Origin: Octopus bimaculoides
Lineage: Eukaryota
NCBI RefSeq assembly: GCF_001194135.2
Contig: NC_068991.1
Location: 6,986,780 to 7,050,779, forward strand
Reading direction: 5' to 3'
Length of the DNA: 64,000 nucleotides
Part shown: piece after piece, positions 6,052 through 60,986 of the stretch
Position numbering within the stretch: position 1 is the first letter of the stretch
Layout of the letters: every line of letters begins with the position of its first letter
Position numbers and translations under genes: made by a program
Notes under the pieces: model-generated
The model's database searches: none
Seen by the model: only the letters and a program-made list of their open reading frames with translations
Told to the model about the DNA's origin: nothing

Positions 6052-6917
6052 NNNNNNNNNNNNNNNNNNNNNNNNNNNNNNNNNNNNNNNNNNNNNNNNN
6101 NNNNNNNNNNNNNNNNNNNNNNNNNNNNNNNNNNNNNNNNNNNNNNNNNNNNNNNNNNNNNNNNNNNNNNNNNNNNNNNNNNNNNNNNNNNNNNNNNNNN
6201 NNNNNNNNNNNNNNNNNNNNNNNNNNNNNNNNNNNNNNNNNNNNNNNNNNNNNNNNNNNNNNNNNNNNNNNNNNNNNNNNNNNNNNNNNNNNNNNNNNNN
6301 NNNNNNNNNNNNNNNNNNNNNNNNNNNNNNNNNNNNNNNNNNNNNNNNNNNNNNNNNNNNNNNNNNNNNNNNNNNNNNNNNNNNNNNNNNNNNNNNNNNN
6401 NNNNNNNNNNNNNNNNNNNNNNNNNNNNNNNNNNNNNNNNNNNNNNNNNNNNNNNNNNNNNNNNNNNNNNNNNNNNNNNNNNNNNNNNNNNNNNNNNNNN
6501 NNNNNNNNNNNNNNNNNNNNNNNNNNNNNNNNNNNNNNNNNNNNNNNNNNNNNNNNNNNNNNNNNNNNNNNNNNNNNNNNNNNNNNNNNNNNNNNNNNNN
6601 NNNNNNNNNNNNNNNNNNNNNNNNNNNNNNNNNNNNNNNNNNNNNNNNNNNNNNNNNNNNNNNNNNNNNNNNNNNNNNNNNNNNNNNNNNNNNNNNNNNN
6701 NNNNNNNNNNNNNNNNNNNNNNNNNNNNNNNNNNNNNNNNNNNNNNNNNNNNNNNNNNNNNNNNNNNNNNNNNNNNNNNNNNNNNNNNNNNNNNNNNNNN
6801 NNNNNNNNNNNNNNNNNNNNNNNNNNNNNNNNNNNNNNNNNNNNNNNNNNNNNNNNNNNNNNNNNNNNNNNNNNNNNNNNNNNNNNNNNNNNNNNNNNNN
6901 NNNNNNNNNNNNNNNNN
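6052..6917. other. Assembly gap (other gaps: 10761-10789, 23266-23452, 40461-41086, 59958-60142, 60508-60832)
   Basis: Runs of N, mostly flanked by microsatellites or homopolymers. Confidence 1.
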
Positions 6918-10232: not shown

Positions 10233-11232
10233 TCAAACTTTTAGCAAAGATCAAAGGTCACGTTACCAGAGTTTTATATATTAAATAAATTGCCCACATC
10301 TCCCTGCCAGCAAATTAACTTGAGGAATCGCTGTTATACTTTGTTTAATGTCAGTTTTTCTATGGATTGGATAGGACCTTATCTGGGGCAATACTTTTAC
10401 ATCTAAATGCTCATCCTATTTTACAAGTAAAGGAGTCTCATTCCATTACTTTAAAAGTGCAAAGCTACAGGATGTAATGTTCATTGGAAATATAAACAAC
10501 ATGACATTGTCTTTTTAAGTTCAAACAGTATCATGCAAGAAGCAGAAATGACAGCTTTCATATATGTGTGTGTGTGTGTGTACACATACACGGTTCAGTA
10601 TCAAAAGGGTTACCAGCTGTTTTCCATTCTAGTATGGCATGATTTTACAACTGATTTTTACAAGATGCACTTCCTGTCACCAACCCTAACTGATCTTTGT
10701 GGTGAGAGATTTATATTCCAGAGGAAATTGATAACCGCAGCTACATCAGTTTTTATATATNNNNNNNNNNNNNNNNNNNNNNNNNNNNNATATATATATA
10801 TATATATATAACAATGCACTGGTCTACAGCAGATAAGAAGAGTATGGTTTTAAAAGTATTTGGTGAGTTATCCATCAGAGCAAAACTGTACCAAGAATAA
10901 TAATTCTATATAATACATTATGTAAATAATTCAATTTTAATAAATACTGTAAATAAATAAATCAAGGCTCACATCCTGTCAGTTTACTACATGCCAGGCT
11001 TTTTTCCCCACCAATCGAAAATAATGCCTTTTTCACACCAAAACATCACTAAGACCAATAGAATTATCTCCCTTGAACCATCTTACCCCCATTACCACTC
11101 ACTACCAATGGCTACCATGAAGGTTTAGATTGAGGATGCACACAAGCGACATTTTTGTTTTAATTTCGTTTTTAGCAAAGGTATGTAGATTTTCAGCTCT
11201 AATCAAGAAATACTAAATGTCTAAGTAATTTA

Positions 11233-13544: not shown

Positions 13545-14294
13545 AACAGTTTACATACAAGAGAAATCAGCTATAATGGTTTTTACTTAAATAGTTAATA
13601 TTTTGTTCAACAGGATGCAGTTTATTTACACACACATACAGGAGAGAGAAACACTACAGACAGAAACAGAATACTTTCTGCTAAAAACTTGTCTAATAAA
13701 TGAAAAGGCAGCCATAGCAATGGTTGTTAGTGCATTCATAAATTATAACATTGTGCGAGCGAGGAAAGAAAATCACTATGGAGAAATATTTATATATATT
13801 AGATAAAAATTTGACTTATTAAGTCATTTTATATAAAAAATAATCCACAAAATTGGCAGAATCCTGTTAAAAGTGGCAGGGAGAGGTCTGGGGAATGGGG
13901 TAAAATTAATAGCCATGTATTTATTTACACCCGCCGCTTTGTAATTAGAAAATTTTTTAAGGGAGGAAGCAGACCACAAATATAATTGCTAACCTGATAT
14001 CAAATTTACAGTAATTCCTAGTTTCTCATGCCATAAATGGAGAGAGAATACCAAAGACATGCAACTCACAACTAAAATCAAAGACTTAGCACCAATAACA
14101 AAACAGGTAATTTAGATTCATAACTATTTTAATATATAATAAGCAAACCAAATAATAGTCTTTCGACTGCAAGAGCCAAAATAAGAACAAAAATATTAAA
14201 AAAAAAAACACATAAAAATAATAGGCTCAAATATAAGACAAGATTACATAAAAAGTGGACAAAAAGGAACCAGAAGCGTTCAACCTGTGCTTAC

Positions 14295-14378
14295 CCAGAA
14301 AGGCGCGAATGGTAAAGCCCATCCAGGTCAACGGTCAGGTCACGTTTTTCTTTCCTCGCACGTACTGTAGAGGTGTTA
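14295..14378 (-). CDS. YY1: Candidate alternative YY1 exon in intron 2 (84 nt, or 70 nt from the acceptor at 14364)
   Basis: Pyrimidine tract with two AGs 14 nt apart and a consensus donor GG|gtaagc. GC/CpG-richer than the flanks. The 84-nt form is open in frame: (R)NTSTVRARKEKRDLTVDLDGLYHSRLS(G). Confidence 0.5.
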
Positions 14379-18090: not shown

Positions 18091-20954
18091 TCGTGTGCCT
18101 CTATGTGTATGTGGGGATTCTTTCTTGATATTTTAATGGGCAAGATGTTAGAAATTAGTTCCAGTAGGATTTAAGTATGTTGCTTGTGCTGAGATGTTAA
18201 AATGAATTTTGTTATGAATAACATCCCTCAAATATCTAAACAGCTTATATTTTGAGTACTTTGGTTTCCATGTTTTAGGGAAACTAGCAGTTGAATGTTT
18301 AGACTGTTTTAGATTGTACCTAATATTATGGTCCAACATGGCTTATGTTTTGATTGTGGATCAATATACTTCTTGTAATTTTCTCCTGTATCATGTTTTG
18401 CCATAGAATTCTCAGAAGTATTAATCTCTACTGGTTGTAGATATATCTTCTAAGTGCTGTGTGAACTACATTGTGGGAATTACTGTTTTTAAGTCTTATG
18501 AAGGAGGACTATGTGTTTGATGTCCCCTATAGAGTGGAAGCCATACTTATTGTATGATGTTACTGGTTGGTTATTATTATTATCTAAAAGGTTCCATCCC
18601 ATAGTGATCATACATAATAAGTGCCATCTACTTGTATTACTTAGAAAGACAACAGTGGTGAATTTGTTTGGCATGGCAGTAGGATTTTTGATGAATGTTA
18701 GTTTTAGTAGACGTGGACGAAAGAAAGGTATTGTTGAATAAAAGACAACTCTTCCCTTGCAACAATAATGTAATCTAAAACAATGCCAAAGCTAAACAGA
18801 TTTTTTTTTCCCATGTTAACCTATCTTAAAAGCAGCAAGAGCACGTTCAACAAAATTTTCCAGGATTAGAGACAGTTGATGAACGTAAAAGAGTTTGCAG
18901 AGTTAATTACTAACCGTTATCCCAACAATTCATATTGTCTCTCTAGAGAGAAACTTACCTTCTATTGTCAAGTTTTCAGAGAAATAACATGAAATGGATG
19001 TTGAGGATAAAATTATAAGGTAAATAGCATATTTTATTTGAACCAGTAACCATTCACACAGTTTAACAAGCTTTGCTTTAAATGTTCTATCACGATAATT
19101 AAAATAAACCAGTCACTGCTCATATATTTCTAATAGTGAAAAGTCAAGTTATGAAAGAAGCTTCAAACTAATATTTAATTTAAATGTCACATAAATTAAA
19201 TATTTGGACAAATGACACAAGTGTGGATGTATGGTTAAAAAAGTTCGCTTGGCAATTACTGGTGTTTATTTGTTTTATTAAACCTTCCAAGGCGGTGCCC
19301 CAGTATGGTCACAGCCCAATGAGTGAAACAAGGGAATAAAAGATGCCAATTATTCAGAAAAATCTATTGAATTCGGTGTAGCTACATTTCAGATAATTAA
19401 ACGATGAAAAACATCCAAGCGATACAGCAGAAATTTATTTTACACACACTCAATGTTAATGAAAACAAATTTACAATTGTTTTCGCATCGATCCAGATTG
19501 ACTGCATTACTGTATACACACAACTCGGCGATGGAGCAACGCAATTTTACAATCATGAAAATACATGAATAAAAGCTCCGTTCATTCTGTGTTTTCTCTT
19601 TAAATCTTTCATCTATTTTCAAATATTTTCAGTTATTTTATGGGTACACAATAGCCTTCAGGATTTACAAAAATTATTTCCTGACCTGCTAGATCGTGTA
19701 TTACTCATTTAAGTCCAGTTCATTACACCTGTCGTAAACTTTACTTTATTTTTTTTGTTAATCATTAATTTTAAAACCAAAAGAGCTTCCGTTGCATTCG
19801 TAAATTATATTTTGGTATATCAAAGATAGTGTGATTGTCCAGCCCAGGTAGGGCAAACCTTCAATCAAAGGCATTCCAGACACGATCGTTGTGTCTTTAT
19901 TTGAAACACATTGTCTAAGGACTACATTGTCCTGTGATTCGGTGACGATTTGGTTGATATTTCTAGCAGGCTAATAATCCCTGTGAATCCCGCAGAATAA
20001 TTAGATTGTATTGTGCAATACAACGGAATACAGTTTTAGATTAAATGCACCAATGAGTTTAACAAGTTTATAGCAGAGGATTCGTTAGTATATAAAAAGA
20101 AAAACGATCAACATCCGAACGCTTCCTGTAAATTTTTGATGACAATATCTTAACGTTTACGGAAGTGATAAAGGAGCAGGCTAGTTGTTTGGGTTAGACA
20201 AGAATAACAATAATAAGCTACTTGTATCAAGAAATGAACGAAGAAAACGACGGAATAAACATTTCGAAATAATTCCATTATAATTTAGAAGCGTACAAAA
20301 TAAATCAGACACAGAAAAGAAAACGAGGAGAGAAATTACGCCATAGGAAATAGTTTAACACACGATCTTCTTTAAGTGAATGCTGTAGCGTTATATTAGT
20401 GTAATCACAAAATCAATTTATATTTGATAAGGAAAAATAATATTTTCTTCCCTTTCAAAGATATATAATATAAAAATTAAAAACCAACAAAAGCTGGTAG
20501 TGAAACTGCCTCGACTTATTTCGTTACACAGCAGCCAGAAAAATTTTAAATGCAGATAATAACCAATTGTTTATTTTAGAAAGCATTAATCGATTTATAT
20601 ACACGAAATAATGTTAAAATTATAGAGTTTGTTTGATTTTTATTTCCATATCAACTTACCTAAATGAAGTGAAAATCGTGAAATATACATCCACACAGCA
20701 GCGCGCACTTGCTGGCAGCCATGAAGCACACACACACACACATACATACGTATACAAACACATAGACAATAGTGAAGAGACTCTACAACAGATCATGGAA
20801 ATTTGACCAGTTTAAAGCTTGATTATAAAAATAAATATCATAAAACTATACTATAACTTGTTATAAAAATTTTTTACTGAAATTTATTAGGCTAATAGAG
20901 TTCTCAATTGAATATTTCCCTTCGAATTTCAAGGACGACCAAGTTAGTGTTCAC

Positions 20955-21035
20955 AAAAATGGCCGCCATCCGCCATAGTATATTTTCCGCCATATTCTCA
21001 GAATATGGCGGCGCCCATGGAAATCATGATGGCCG
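20955..21035. promoter_or_regulatory. Cluster of YY1-binding motifs in YY1 intron 1
   Basis: Six GCCAT/ATGGC cores in about 75 bp: AAAATGGCCG, CCGCCATC, CCGCCATAG, CCGCCATATT, AATATGGCGG, GATGGCCG. Includes a perfect 12-bp inverted repeat at 20987-21011. Confidence 0.8.
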
Positions 21036-21340
21036 ACTTCAAAATCAAAACAAACATGTGTATAGCTAACAATATTCATCAAAGATGACTTAAAATAGGG
21101 TCCAGCTTTCTTTAAAATGAATACAGAGCGGCTACATAAAATGCCCCAGTTTGTGGCTTACGTCACAGAGAAGCTATGACCTTTTCAACATAGATTTATT
21201 GACTTTCTTTCTCGAACAGCAGCTTATCGGTCTAGGGTTTGACGGAAAGACTCGATATAAGCAAGAAACGATATCGAGTTAATAAAAATAATCAGTGTAT
21301 TCGGGATGATACAAAACAGATAATCAAAGTAGAGAAATCA

Positions 21341-22193
<853 letters not shown>

Positions 22194-22275
22194 ATGGGTG
22201 CCAAAGTTTCTAGGACAGATTTTGAATGGTCTTACACCCAAGAACCACATGCTTCACGAAGAAAAGCAATAATGG
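22194..22275 (+). CDS. DEGS1: Sphingolipid delta4-desaturase (DEGS1/2 family) exon 1 (not in the ORF track)
   Basis: Encodes [27 protein letters not shown] plus G|gtaagg (82 nt). Matches the DEGS N-terminal Lipid_DES motif, with Gly2 as a potential myristoylation site. Confidence 0.95.
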
Positions 22276-23751
22276 GTAAGGAAATATATACGATTACATT
22301 ATATTTCTCTTAATAAAAAACGCCAAATGGTTCCTCCATCTTCTTTGATGCCCAGACAATGTCAATAGGATGCTGTTCCTGCTTTTATTTCCTCTCCATT
22401 ACAAATAACTCCCACAAAATCCCTACCAGTTGCTCGACTTAATCCTTTTCTTTCTTATTTGTTTTACTTGTCATTTCTTAATTAAACCGTGTTAACCCAC
22501 TGTCATTAAGAAATCTGTTATTCAGACACGTTTCATCTTTGTTCTATTTTCCGTATATGGTCGGAGGCTGTTTCCTTCATCTTATTTCTATTCGTTGTCT
22601 TTATATATATTTTTTCGATTATGAATTTGTTTTTTTTTTCTTTCATTATAGAGGATTAATTGATCGTTTAAAAAGTATAATTGTAACTCTTTTTTCGCAG
22701 TACATATGTTTAACTTGTATGTGTGCGCGTATGTATGTAGCGTGGATATTTGCTGTTACATTTTGTGGAATGTGCCTGTGGGGTGAGTGTCTGTGTGTGT
22801 AACTGTTTTTATGATCGTATGTGTGTTTGCACACACTTCACCTTGTGGACTTGTCACACTGCTTGCGATAGATTTTAGCTGTGAAGAAACTAACTGTAAA
22901 TTAAATACATTTCGGATAATTCCGTTAAATCGGATCTCATCCAGCATATACAATCTACATCGAAGCGAAAAAAATTCTTTTAGCTAAAATCCTTTTAATA
23001 GCTTCAATTCTAAATGTTTAAGATGTTTAATTAAACTTCTAAAGGAGAACTTTATTTCATCTGTGACTGTAATAGCGGTGGAATTTCGGAATAAACACCC
23101 ACCCATTACTTTTTTCCTCACGAAAATTCCTGTGGTTTCCTATTTGTGATATATCGGGGGTGCAGTTCTCAAACTTTGTGTTTCGAGGTACGCAGCCGGC
23201 CGTAACTTTTATTTTTAACCTTTGATTTTTACTTGTTTCATGCTGAAGCACCGCCTTGAATTTTANNNNNNNNNNNNNNNNNNNNNNNNNNNNNNNNNNN
23301 NNNNNNNNNNNNNNNNNNNNNNNNNNNNNNNNNNNNNNNNNNNNNNNNNNNNNNNNNNNNNNNNNNNNNNNNNNNNNNNNNNNNNNNNNNNNNNNNNNNN
23401 NNNNNNNNNNNNNNNNNNNNNNNNNNNNNNNNNNNNNNNNNNNNNNNNNNNNGGGAGCAAAACTTAGCCACACCCGCGCTTTTCTCTCAATTTTTTTTTT
23501 TTTTTATCTTTTCTAAATTATGTTTTAAGCACTTGTAACGATTAATGACTAGTGAAAAAGGAATTGGCACTTATCATTTTCTGCAGGCTGTCTACGGTTC
23601 CTCTTTGAGTTTTGGTTAGATCCCTTTCACTTACATTAATGTGTGTCTGACCTTTTCATCTAGGACTATAAAATTTGATTTGAATACGGTATACAACGAA
23701 GAGCCGGTATTTGAAGCTACACGTTTTGCACTTGTCATTGATGAAGTAGCC

Positions 23752-40270: not shown

Positions 40271-41297
40271 AAGAAATTGGGTCGGACTTGTTTGTCAGTA
40301 ATTACTTTCTTACAGAAGTACTTATTTTTAAATACATTAATGTGTGTGTGCGTGTGCGTGTGTGTGTGTGTGTGTGTTCATATACATATGTGTGATATAT
40401 GATGTATGTCTATTTTGATTAATGTATGAAAAAAATGAAGTACCTAGCTTATAAGTATTCNNNNNNNNNNNNNNNNNNNNNNNNNNNNNNNNNNNNNNNN
40501 NNNNNNNNNNNNNNNNNNNNNNNNNNNNNNNNNNNNNNNNNNNNNNNNNNNNNNNNNNNNNNNNNNNNNNNNNNNNNNNNNNNNNNNNNNNNNNNNNNNN
40601 NNNNNNNNNNNNNNNNNNNNNNNNNNNNNNNNNNNNNNNNNNNNNNNNNNNNNNNNNNNNNNNNNNNNNNNNNNNNNNNNNNNNNNNNNNNNNNNNNNNN
40701 NNNNNNNNNNNNNNNNNNNNNNNNNNNNNNNNNNNNNNNNNNNNNNNNNNNNNNNNNNNNNNNNNNNNNNNNNNNNNNNNNNNNNNNNNNNNNNNNNNNN
40801 NNNNNNNNNNNNNNNNNNNNNNNNNNNNNNNNNNNNNNNNNNNNNNNNNNNNNNNNNNNNNNNNNNNNNNNNNNNNNNNNNNNNNNNNNNNNNNNNNNNN
40901 NNNNNNNNNNNNNNNNNNNNNNNNNNNNNNNNNNNNNNNNNNNNNNNNNNNNNNNNNNNNNNNNNNNNNNNNNNNNNNNNNNNNNNNNNNNNNNNNNNNN
41001 NNNNNNNNNNNNNNNNNNNNNNNNNNNNNNNNNNNNNNNNNNNNNNNNNNNNNNNNNNNNNNNNNNNNNNNNNNNNNNNNNNNNNCCCCCCCCCCCCATG
41101 AATTTTGCTTGTTTCTCTTGTGCATTACTTATTTGCTATCTGTTTGTGTCAAAACTTGCAATCAACCTACTTCATGTTATCCTCAAAATTGCTATGTCCT
41201 TCCCCTTTATTCTTTTCAATATAATGGATGCAATTTTCTTTGATCTTTTTGGTCTAAATAATAATGTTTTCTTTTTTCCTTTGAATTTCTCATGTGA

Positions 41298-59932: not shown

Positions 59933-60986
59933 CTGAAACGACAAAGGAGAAAGAAAANNNNNNNNNNNNNNNNNNNNNNNNNNNNNNNNNNNNNNNNNNN
60001 NNNNNNNNNNNNNNNNNNNNNNNNNNNNNNNNNNNNNNNNNNNNNNNNNNNNNNNNNNNNNNNNNNNNNNNNNNNNNNNNNNNNNNNNNNNNNNNNNNNN
60101 NNNNNNNNNNNNNNNNNNNNNNNNNNNNNNNNNNNNNNNNNNAAAGCATTTAAATGTTGGTTTCAAATTTTGGCACAAGGCCAGCAATTTCAGGAGAGAG
60201 GGTAAGTCGATTACATTGGACCCCAGTGCTCAATCAGTACTTATTTTATTGACCCCGAAAGGATAAAAGGCAAAGCTGACCTCGACAGAATTTGAACTCA
60301 GAATGTAAAGACATGAAATGCTGCTGAGCATTTTGCACAACATGCTAATGAGATGTTTCGTAACATATTTCTGTGTGTGTGTGTGTGTGTGTGTGCGTGT
60401 ATGTGAATATGTGCACATGTGGGAGGGAATGTGTGTGTGTATTAGTATGTGTGCGGGAGTGAATGTGTGTGTTAGTATGTGTGTAGGAGTGAATATGTGT
60501 GTGTTAGNNNNNNNNNNNNNNNNNNNNNNNNNNNNNNNNNNNNNNNNNNNNNNNNNNNNNNNNNNNNNNNNNNNNNNNNNNNNNNNNNNNNNNNNNNNNN
60601 NNNNNNNNNNNNNNNNNNNNNNNNNNNNNNNNNNNNNNNNNNNNNNNNNNNNNNNNNNNNNNNNNNNNNNNNNNNNNNNNNNNNNNNNNNNNNNNNNNNN
60701 NNNNNNNNNNNNNNNNNNNNNNNNNNNNNNNNNNNNNNNNNNNNNNNNNNNNNNNNNNNNNNNNNNNNNNNNNNNNNNNNNNNNNNNNNNNNNNNNNNNN
60801 NNNNNNNNNNNNNNNNNNNNNNNNNNNNNNNNGGCTGTGTGATTGAGACACTCACCTTGCAACCACATGGTTTCAGGTGTGCTGCATAAACCTGCATAAA
60901 CCTGCATAAACCTGCATAGACTGTGCCAGCATGGAAAATGGATGCTAAACAACAACAATGATGGAAGTGGCAACAGTGATGATGAT

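Follow-up and report, generated by a model that had tools for sequence, protein, structure and literature searches.

A cluster of YY1-type sites in the first intron of octopus YY1 is a probable orthologue of the vertebrate intron-1 cluster and a candidate feedback module

The first intron of the Octopus bimaculoides YY1 gene carries, near its start, a dense group of GCCAT-type words, the motif read by YY1 itself. This raises the question of whether a mollusc gene senses its own product through the design described for vertebrates, and whether such a design was inherited or built twice. In vertebrates, amphioxus, sea squirt and sea urchin, a stretch of 100 bp at the start of YY1 intron 1 contains approximately five YY1 sites (Kim, Yu & Kim 2009, BMC Mol Biol 10:85; PMC2743690). 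The first two sites of the vertebrate cluster face one direction and the rest the opposite direction, and the third is an imperfect GCCATAnT site, a type of lower affinity (PMC2743690). YY1 occupancy of the cluster was demonstrated by ChIP, alteration of any site in reporter constructs abolished promoter activity, and inducible over-expression of YY1 led to repression of the endogenous YY1 gene (PMC2743690). The initial annotation of the octopus locus had stated that such autoregulation was reported for vertebrates, and this is the paper that reports it. Nothing similar was seen in Drosophila pho, and the region was dated after the vertebrate-invertebrate divergence (PMC2743690).

All coordinates given here refer to the window, the whole stretch of 64,000 nucleotides that was analysed. 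YY1 lies on the minus strand, where the coding part of exon 1 (21346-21796) extends from the ATG at 21796-21794 to the last exon base at 21346, encodes Met to ...FSVTMWAT-G and ends with a phase 1 donor, with intron 1 starting at 21345. The four other coding exons are found on the same strand near 16203-16047, 12442-12385, 11436-11278 and 10178-10009. The assembled protein is 100% identical to the annotated Octopus YY1 proteins. Its zinc-finger exons, encoding four fingers, share 93-100% identity with human YY1, in agreement with the near-identity proposed in the initial annotation, and the DNA-binding specificity of the octopus protein is expected to be YY1-like. Octopod YY1 isoform X1 contains a cassette exon (window ~14294-14365, minus strand) that adds 28 residues (NTSTVRARKEKRDL...), while other isoforms are without this exon. 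Runs of N mark assembly gaps at 6052-6917, 10761-10789, 23266-23452, 40461-41085, 59958-60142 and 60508-60832; the element described below is untouched by any of them.

The cluster consists of six GCCAT/ATGGC cores that start at 20959, 20965, 20972, 20989, 21005 and 21029, within 80 bp (20955-21035) and 310-390 bp into YY1 intron 1 beyond the exon-1 donor at 21346/21345. Three of the cores fit GCCATnTT and four fit CCGCCAT. To score the sites we used a PWM trained on 99 orthologous sites of other animals, octopods excluded. The array spans 84 bp; read on the YY1 strand, s1 and s2 are sense, s3-s5 are antisense and the final site, s6, is sense again. The s1 site (GTCGGCCATCATGA, 21024-21037, minus strand, sense to YY1; 15.3 bits) combines a GCCAT core with a weak 3' half, and the same 14-mer is also found in Argonauta, Pecten and one annelid-like contig. 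The s2 site (CGCCGCCATATTCT, 21000-21013, minus strand, sense) matches the full consensus and, at 19.0 bits, is the top PWM match of the 64 kb. Its 5' flank and core are covered by a 14-mer, ATGGGCGCCGCCAT (21005-21018, minus strand, in YY1-strand reading), that is invariant across the species compared below and that also holds a seventh, weaker site-like word, GCGCCCAT. The s3 site (TTCCGCCATATTCT, 20985-20998, plus strand, antisense to YY1; 14.9 bits) is the other full-consensus site. The words CCGCCATATT at 20987-20996 and AATATGGCGG at 21002-21011 fall in the two arms of an exact inverted repeat, CCGCCATATTCT-C-AGAATATGGCGG (20987-21011), with 12-bp arms and a one-base centre, s2 and s3 each occupying an arm. 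The s4 site (ATCCGCCATAGTAT, 20968-20981, plus strand, antisense; 12.2 bits) is of the GCCATAnT type. The s5 site (GGCCGCCATCCGCC, 20961-20974, plus strand, antisense; 15.4 bits) is an extra site that is not present in Argonauta or most protostomes, and s6 (GGCGGCCATTTTTG, 20954-20967, minus strand, sense; 18.3 bits) is the terminal sense site typical of protostomes. The s5 and s6 cores form a back-to-back pair, ATGGC-C-GCCAT, at 20959-20969, and s4 and s6 form a divergent pair, ATGGCGG-N6-GCCAT. The initial annotation was accurate on this inventory: its six cores (20959-21033), two full-consensus sites and back-to-back pair are all in the sequence, and its distance to the donor agrees with the gene model. 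It had missed the seventh word and a YY1-type match, CGACGCCATTTTGA, that lies over the YY1 start codon (21788-21801, plus strand) and at 16.2 bits is the third best PWM match of the window. Similar start-codon matches occur in Pecten and amphioxus, where further sites lie a short way 5' of the ATG. The ATGGCGG words were also considered as coding sequence, a reading that was set aside, as only short ORFs (53 aa, plus strand) are present.

The concentration of sites is well above chance. The window contains 102 GCCAT cores, and the intron-1 cluster is the sole group of at least three. The cluster accounts for every one of the window's four CCGCCAT words and for four of the window's 11 CGCCAT words. 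In 300 first-order Markov simulations, the maximum per 80 bp was four cores, compared with six observed, and one CCGCCAT word, compared with four observed. Five of the six best PWM matches in the window fall within the cluster, the remaining one being the match across the start codon. The cluster packs six matches scoring 10 bits or more into 84 bp, against a simulated maximum of two per 100 bp, so the density claimed in the initial annotation held up when scanned with a PWM. YY1 motifs are known in repeats, and one example is present in our own sample: a 146/326-bp tandem repeat with CCAAGATGGCGGCC in the scallop locus (L003 26465-28170, 1613-1851), positioned in a YY1 intron and on the DEGS side. 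We nevertheless give next to no credence to the octopus segment having come from a multicopy repeat or transposon, or to its sites having clustered by chance. The element occurs once in the 64-kb window and its 14-mer once per locus over 281 kb of loci, it has persisted in orthologous position for over 500 Myr, and the observed density was not reached in any simulation. The multicopy origin that the initial annotation had raised against its own proposal is therefore not what the loci contain.

The composition of the surrounding DNA also sets this region apart. CpG o/e is 0.33 window-wide, and the top six 1.5-kb intervals all start within 19000-21500, with a maximum of 1.13; the value at 20400-21900 is 0.89. 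The CpG-undepleted domain, at about 19000-22000 and elevated to ~23000, covers exon 1 of YY1 and ~2.3 kb at the start of intron 1, the cluster included. It is the sole undepleted stretch of the 64-kb window, and its highest values centre on the beginning of YY1 intron 1 rather than on the intergenic region, as would suit a promoter-proximal regulatory domain around the cluster.

We compared the octopus intron with YY1 loci of other animals, which were picked by protein only and scanned afterwards. The locus sample comprises nine independent named species from five phyla, with squid, cuttlefish, Nautilus, chiton, limpet and brachiopod falling outside it. One locus, from CM046611.1, equals the reverse complement of window positions 1-26796 (0 mismatches in 26,796 bases) and was dropped as an independent species. 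All nine species, octopus included, have a GCCAT cluster shortly past YY1 exon 1. Measured from the exon 1 end and written in YY1-strand orientation, the cluster is found at +322 in Argonauta hians, +290 in Pecten maximus and +339 in Aplysia californica (each ++--+), at +251 in Capitella teleta (++--+-), at +277 in Priapulus caudatus (++---+, the octopus pattern), at +586 in Limulus polyphemus (++-+), at +339 in Branchiostoma floridae (+--) and at +202 in Clupea harengus (++---), where the third site is GCCATACT, matching the description by Kim et al. In nine of ten loci, one of which is the duplicate of the window, the intron-1 cluster is the densest GCCAT group of a locus of 12-38 kb and lies 200-590 bp past exon 1; simulations of those loci gave at most 3-5 cores per 100 bp. 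The initial annotation had proposed alignment of intron 1 across phyla and had treated conservation in other coleoids as decisive. The element does occupy the same place in the nine species, and within coleoids it extends to another octopod family with Argonauta.

The similarity goes beyond the presence of sites. The word ATGGGCGC(C/A)GCCAT is invariant in nine of nine species, bar the one C/A position, and each locus has a single copy of the invariant 14-mer, which in every case lies in intron 1 and reads in the YY1 sense direction. The octopus and scallop elements align nearly base for base over ~100 bp. Across 18 taxa the best conserved site is s2, with the consensus CGCnGCCATATTnT, and its wider context is nearly identical too, with CGCCGCCATATTC in octopus, scallop, Aplysia and herring. 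The taxa share a strand syntax of ++--(-)(+). Spacing is 23-24 bp between s1 and s2 in 13 of 18 taxa and 16-17 bp between s3 and s4 in 12 of 18, while the s2-s3 spacing varies from 12 to 29 bp. The cores are invariant as the flanks and the s2-s3 spacer drift, a concentration of constraint that fits protein-binding sites. The block TTTGTTTTG (21046-21054, minus strand), approximately 20 bp 5' of s1, has an identical offset in octopods, Pecten, Aplysia and herring.

To express this similarity as a score, we built an nhmmer profile of 127 positions from annelid, priapulid, horseshoe-crab, insect-like and vertebrate elements, with no mollusc included. Against the octopus window the profile gave one strong match, 21056-20949 on the minus strand, at 85.4 bits (E = 7.6e-26; profile positions 8-121), which delimits the whole conserved intronic element, the cluster together with its 5' flank, as 20949-21056. 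Other molluscs scored 57-76 bits, an ant-like contig and a fish-like contig 32 bits each, and amphioxus 17 bits. The scallop satellite, which is rich in YY1 consensus words and serves as a motif-only calibrator, reached just 12-17 bits, and motif content alone therefore contributes little to the profile score. Protostome and deuterostome non-coding sequences align significantly at the orthologous YY1 locus, which supports the octopus element as an orthologue of the vertebrate YY1 intron-1 cluster.

These data bear directly on whether molluscs could have built an intron-1 YY1-site cluster independently of deuterostomes. Short transcription-factor sites arise easily, and Drosophila pho lacks a cluster according to Kim et al. 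(PMC2743690); in addition, a coral cluster described below sits in a different intron and scores ~11 bits with the profile, making independent clusters conceivable. Convergence is nonetheless strongly disfavoured, and we regard it as very improbable. It would have to produce 14 invariant bases that extend beyond the motif, the TTTGTTTTG block in molluscs and herring, the same site order, strand and spacing, a continuous distribution over Lophotrochozoa, Ecdysozoa and Deuterostomia, and profile scores of 57-85 bits against 12-17 bits for motif-only repeats. The initial annotation had left open whether a vertebrate-type module in a mollusc was conserved or convergent. Position, 14-mer, syntax, spacings and the profile match (E = 7.6e-26) favour inheritance, with binding and feedback remaining expectations by analogy with vertebrates.

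The distribution of the element was extended with metagenome contigs, which were selected by YY1 exon 1 peptides and not by the DNA motif. This yielded 80 eukaryote-derived contigs in 54 sequence groups, of which approximately 20 are cDNA-like and uninformative; taxon labels for the contigs reflect the best protein match only. The element follows exon 1 in Dreissena-like and Mya-like bivalve contigs, in two annelid-like contig groups, in termite-like (97% to Cryptotermes) and thrips-like contigs and in two fish-like contigs, and a weaker form (32 bits) follows it in ant-like contigs. Three other contigs of uncertain origin have clusters without detectable similarity to the profile. Neither the element nor a profile match was found in a large group of contigs (L041-L056, L061-L064, L066, L068, L069, L078-L080, L082, L085, L087) that has a divergent REPO domain (WERKQ...FTVTVW) and the usual intron position; in a protein search, this divergent YY1 was matched by metagenome proteins only. 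Several taxa with very short introns likewise gave no element and no profile match. Collectively, the element is evidently old and widespread and has apparently been lost repeatedly, which would account for the Drosophila result of Kim et al. as well. It also appears to be dispensable in some contexts, since Drosophila pho (PMC2743690), one metagenome lineage and several short-intron taxa are without it. Lineages that have lost the element offer natural knock-outs.

Intron 1 is short in stony coral contigs, whose YY1 is 97% identical to that of Oculina patagonica, and in a related anthozoan-like contig. In these contigs it is intron 2 that opens with 4-5 strong YY1 sites (L036-L038, ~1620-1745 in L036 coordinates; L033, ~1430-1575), and the coral cluster is ~730 bp from the ATG, compared with 720-1040 bp in bilaterians. 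Its match to the bilaterian profile is ~11 bits (E ~0.01), a value that gives no support to the coral cluster as a proven homologue, and we keep homology as a possibility.

The palindrome at 20987-21011, which the initial annotation had singled out, exists as an exact 12-bp repeat in octopods, but it is evidently not the conserved unit. The s2-s3 spacing ranges over 12-29 bp and s2 and s3 are not appreciably more alike than s2 and s4, so the octopod palindrome is best read as a coincidental 12-bp match between two convergent consensus sites. The s5/s6 back-to-back pair is peculiar to O. bimaculoides among the sampled species, and the older arrangement is the divergent s4/s6 pair, ATGGCGG-N6-GCCAT. 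The perfect repeat, together with the fact that the element always has the same strand relative to the gene, could also point to a unit that acts in pre-mRNA, for example as an inverted-repeat hairpin affecting intron 1 splicing. Outside the GCCAT core, the likeness of s2 and s3 is 0.47, against 0.42 for the non-hairpin pair s2/s4, and loops would be anywhere from 12 to 29 bp long. RNAalifold pairs core with core only, with an unfavourable covariation term (+0.85) and compensatory change in one of 16 pairs, and there is no Rfam match in the element. A structured RNA or hairpin was rejected because the arms do not co-vary, and a role in pre-mRNA is accordingly given very little weight. A SCARNA7 match in the intergenic region was dismissed as chance, at 20 bits against a gathering score of 65.

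The octopus element resembles the cluster of Kim et al. in most respects. Both lie at the start of intron 1 of the same gene, at a density of ~5 sites per ~100 bp there and six cores in 80 bp here; in both, two sense sites are followed by antisense sites that include one of the GCCATAnT type, and the 14-mer ATGGGCGCCGCCAT is common to octopus, herring and amphioxus. The differences concern architecture and distribution. Protostome versions end in an extra sense site (s6), so that the outermost sites face the same direction, in contrast to the vertebrate ++---; as a protostome trait, this terminal site means that the vertebrate description of outermost sites as opposite is not transferable. The octopus in addition has a sixth core (s5) and the perfect 12-bp palindrome. 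The spacers were described as unconserved by Kim et al., whereas the s1-s2 and s3-s4 spacings are conserved here. Lastly, the cluster was reported in deuterostomes only and judged absent from invertebrates by way of Drosophila pho, and our literature searches for protostome reports of a YY1 intron-1 cluster found none. The kind of element is thus already known; the new findings are that it extends through Lophotrochozoa and Ecdysozoa, that its syntax and spacing are fixed and that it contains an invariant 14-mer. This distribution, with the shared syntax and 14-mer, argues for an origin at or before the bilaterian ancestor, against the published dating; the finds in molluscs, annelids, a priapulid, chelicerates and insect-like contigs overturn the inference of a post-divergence origin. 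By analogy with the vertebrate cluster, a specific autoregulatory circuit would thereby date to the bilaterian ancestor at the latest.

With a probability of about 0.75, we take the segment to be an octopus orthologue of this YY1 intron-1 cluster and a promoter-proximal cis-regulatory module by which YY1 most likely senses and adjusts its own transcription. This reading builds on the sites, their enrichment, the single copy in window and loci, orthology, constraint across Bilateria and a near-identical DNA-binding domain, all of which are demonstrated. Octopus YY1 would be expected to bind the cluster sites, and the sign and dose-dependence of its effect on octopus YY1 are predicted from the vertebrate case. 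At an ordinary YY1 level the array would be partially occupied and would support promoter activity, by analogy to zebrafish, mouse and human (Kim et al. 2009). With excess YY1, the array just downstream of the promoter would be fully occupied and transcription would be repressed. Such a dose response would amount to homeostatic negative feedback on YY1.

A conserved, YY1-bound module could instead have a main job other than feedback on YY1 dose: it could act as a constitutive promoter-proximal activator, a loop anchor, a site of Polycomb (Pho-type) recruitment, an internal promoter or a shared control of YY1 and DEGS. Kim et al. themselves mention alternative roles, as an epigenetic target or as the promoter of unknown transcripts (PMC2743690), and three features of the octopus locus would suit such a job. 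The first is the invariant 14-mer, which goes beyond a simple YY1 site. Compared with the usual YY1 logo, s2 has an additional invariant GGGCGC on its 5' side, which may reflect a partner factor or a different reader. The second is another conserved intronic module beside the cluster, AAAGGTCA-N11-TGACGTAA (21158-21184, minus strand), 130-150 bp 5' of s1, which resembles a nuclear-receptor half-site word plus a CRE-like word and suggests input from other factors. In the form AAAGGTCA-N11-TGACGT(A/C)A it is kept in octopods and three bivalves; two annelid-like contigs have AGGTCA at a matching offset, and amphioxus has TGACGTCA at -121. The third is the linkage of YY1 with DEGS, taken up below. 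We rate a principal role outside feedback as unlikely, as the vertebrate counterpart responds to YY1 dose (PMC2743690), amphioxus retains the element without a neighbouring DEGS, and the jobs listed are compatible with feedback.

DEGS encodes a sphingolipid delta-4 desaturase. In the octopus its exon 1 (22194-22275, plus strand) is head to head with YY1, 398 bp from ATG to ATG, and its start at 22194 is ~1.2 kb from the YY1-site cluster. The 398-bp spacer between the start codons is mostly a microsatellite at 21840-21960, with a CA-rich run and (GCT)n. The linkage is kept in eight of nine named species and in four metagenome contigs. Head-to-head pairs were seen in octopus, Argonauta, scallop (259 bp), Aplysia, Priapulus, Limulus (410 bp) and herring; the Limulus annotation lacks the DEGS exon, and the two Capitella genes are separated by one other gene. 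YY1-DEGS thus looks like a bilaterian-wide divergent gene pair. The initial annotation had suggested that the cluster could also control DEGS, an idea to which the conserved pairing lends indirect support. The amphioxus YY1 locus has no adjoining DEGS yet keeps the element, which suggests that linkage to DEGS is not what preserves it. Our literature searches returned nothing relevant on a YY1-DEGS link or on cephalopod YY1 elements.

An extended form of the feedback reading would place the YY1 array among the oldest animal cis-regulatory modules. The array would go back to the cnidarian-bilaterian ancestor, with the coral cluster, which lies equally far from the ATG, as a homologue displaced to intron 2, and would have had a fixed architecture (s1-24 bp-s2, s3-17 bp-s4, invariant ATGGGCGCCGCCAT) as a sensor of YY1 dosage that also holds YY1 and DEGS together as a divergent pair. 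We regard this as a tentative proposal, conceivable though on balance doubtful.

Among known classes of regulatory DNA, the element bears comparison with the bilaterian-conserved segments, of which Bicores (Clarke et al. 2012, PMC3410860) and a set of 25 (Frith & Ni 2023, PMC10735318) have been described. Like these it is non-coding, alignable between protostomes and deuterostomes at an orthologous gene, promoter-proximal and furnished with factor-binding words that are near-perfectly conserved. It differs in consisting mainly of repeated sites for the host gene's own product, and in that YY1 is a ubiquitous regulator, not a patterning gene; YY1 is not in the main text of PMC3410860, PMC10735318 or Davies et al. 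2015. Regulatory DNA that can be aligned between protostomes and deuterostomes is very rare, and this element is unusual in that its vertebrate function is known, namely feedback on a ubiquitous regulator. With invariant and variable parts in ~110 bp, it offers a test bed for the rules of YY1 site number, strand and spacing across phyla. Other YY1-site clusters, at the Peg3 imprinting control region and in a mouse olfactory-receptor paper (PMC2791781), are similar as dense, YY1-bound arrays of GCCAT type. Clusters of the Peg3 type are lineage-restricted and away from the YY1 gene, in contrast to the octopus element, which is ancient, single-copy in window and loci and fixed in syntax. The GCCAT motif is also found in Drosophila Polycomb response elements, where it is read by Pho, the YY1 orthologue. 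These elements combine Pho sites with motifs for other factors and recruit PcG proteins. We know of no Polycomb response element at the YY1 intron-1 position.

The Limulus locus has a mitochondrial-carrier gene downstream of YY1 (L007 34237-34339). In human, SLC25A29 adjoins YY1, and the Limulus carrier gene may represent a further conserved linkage.
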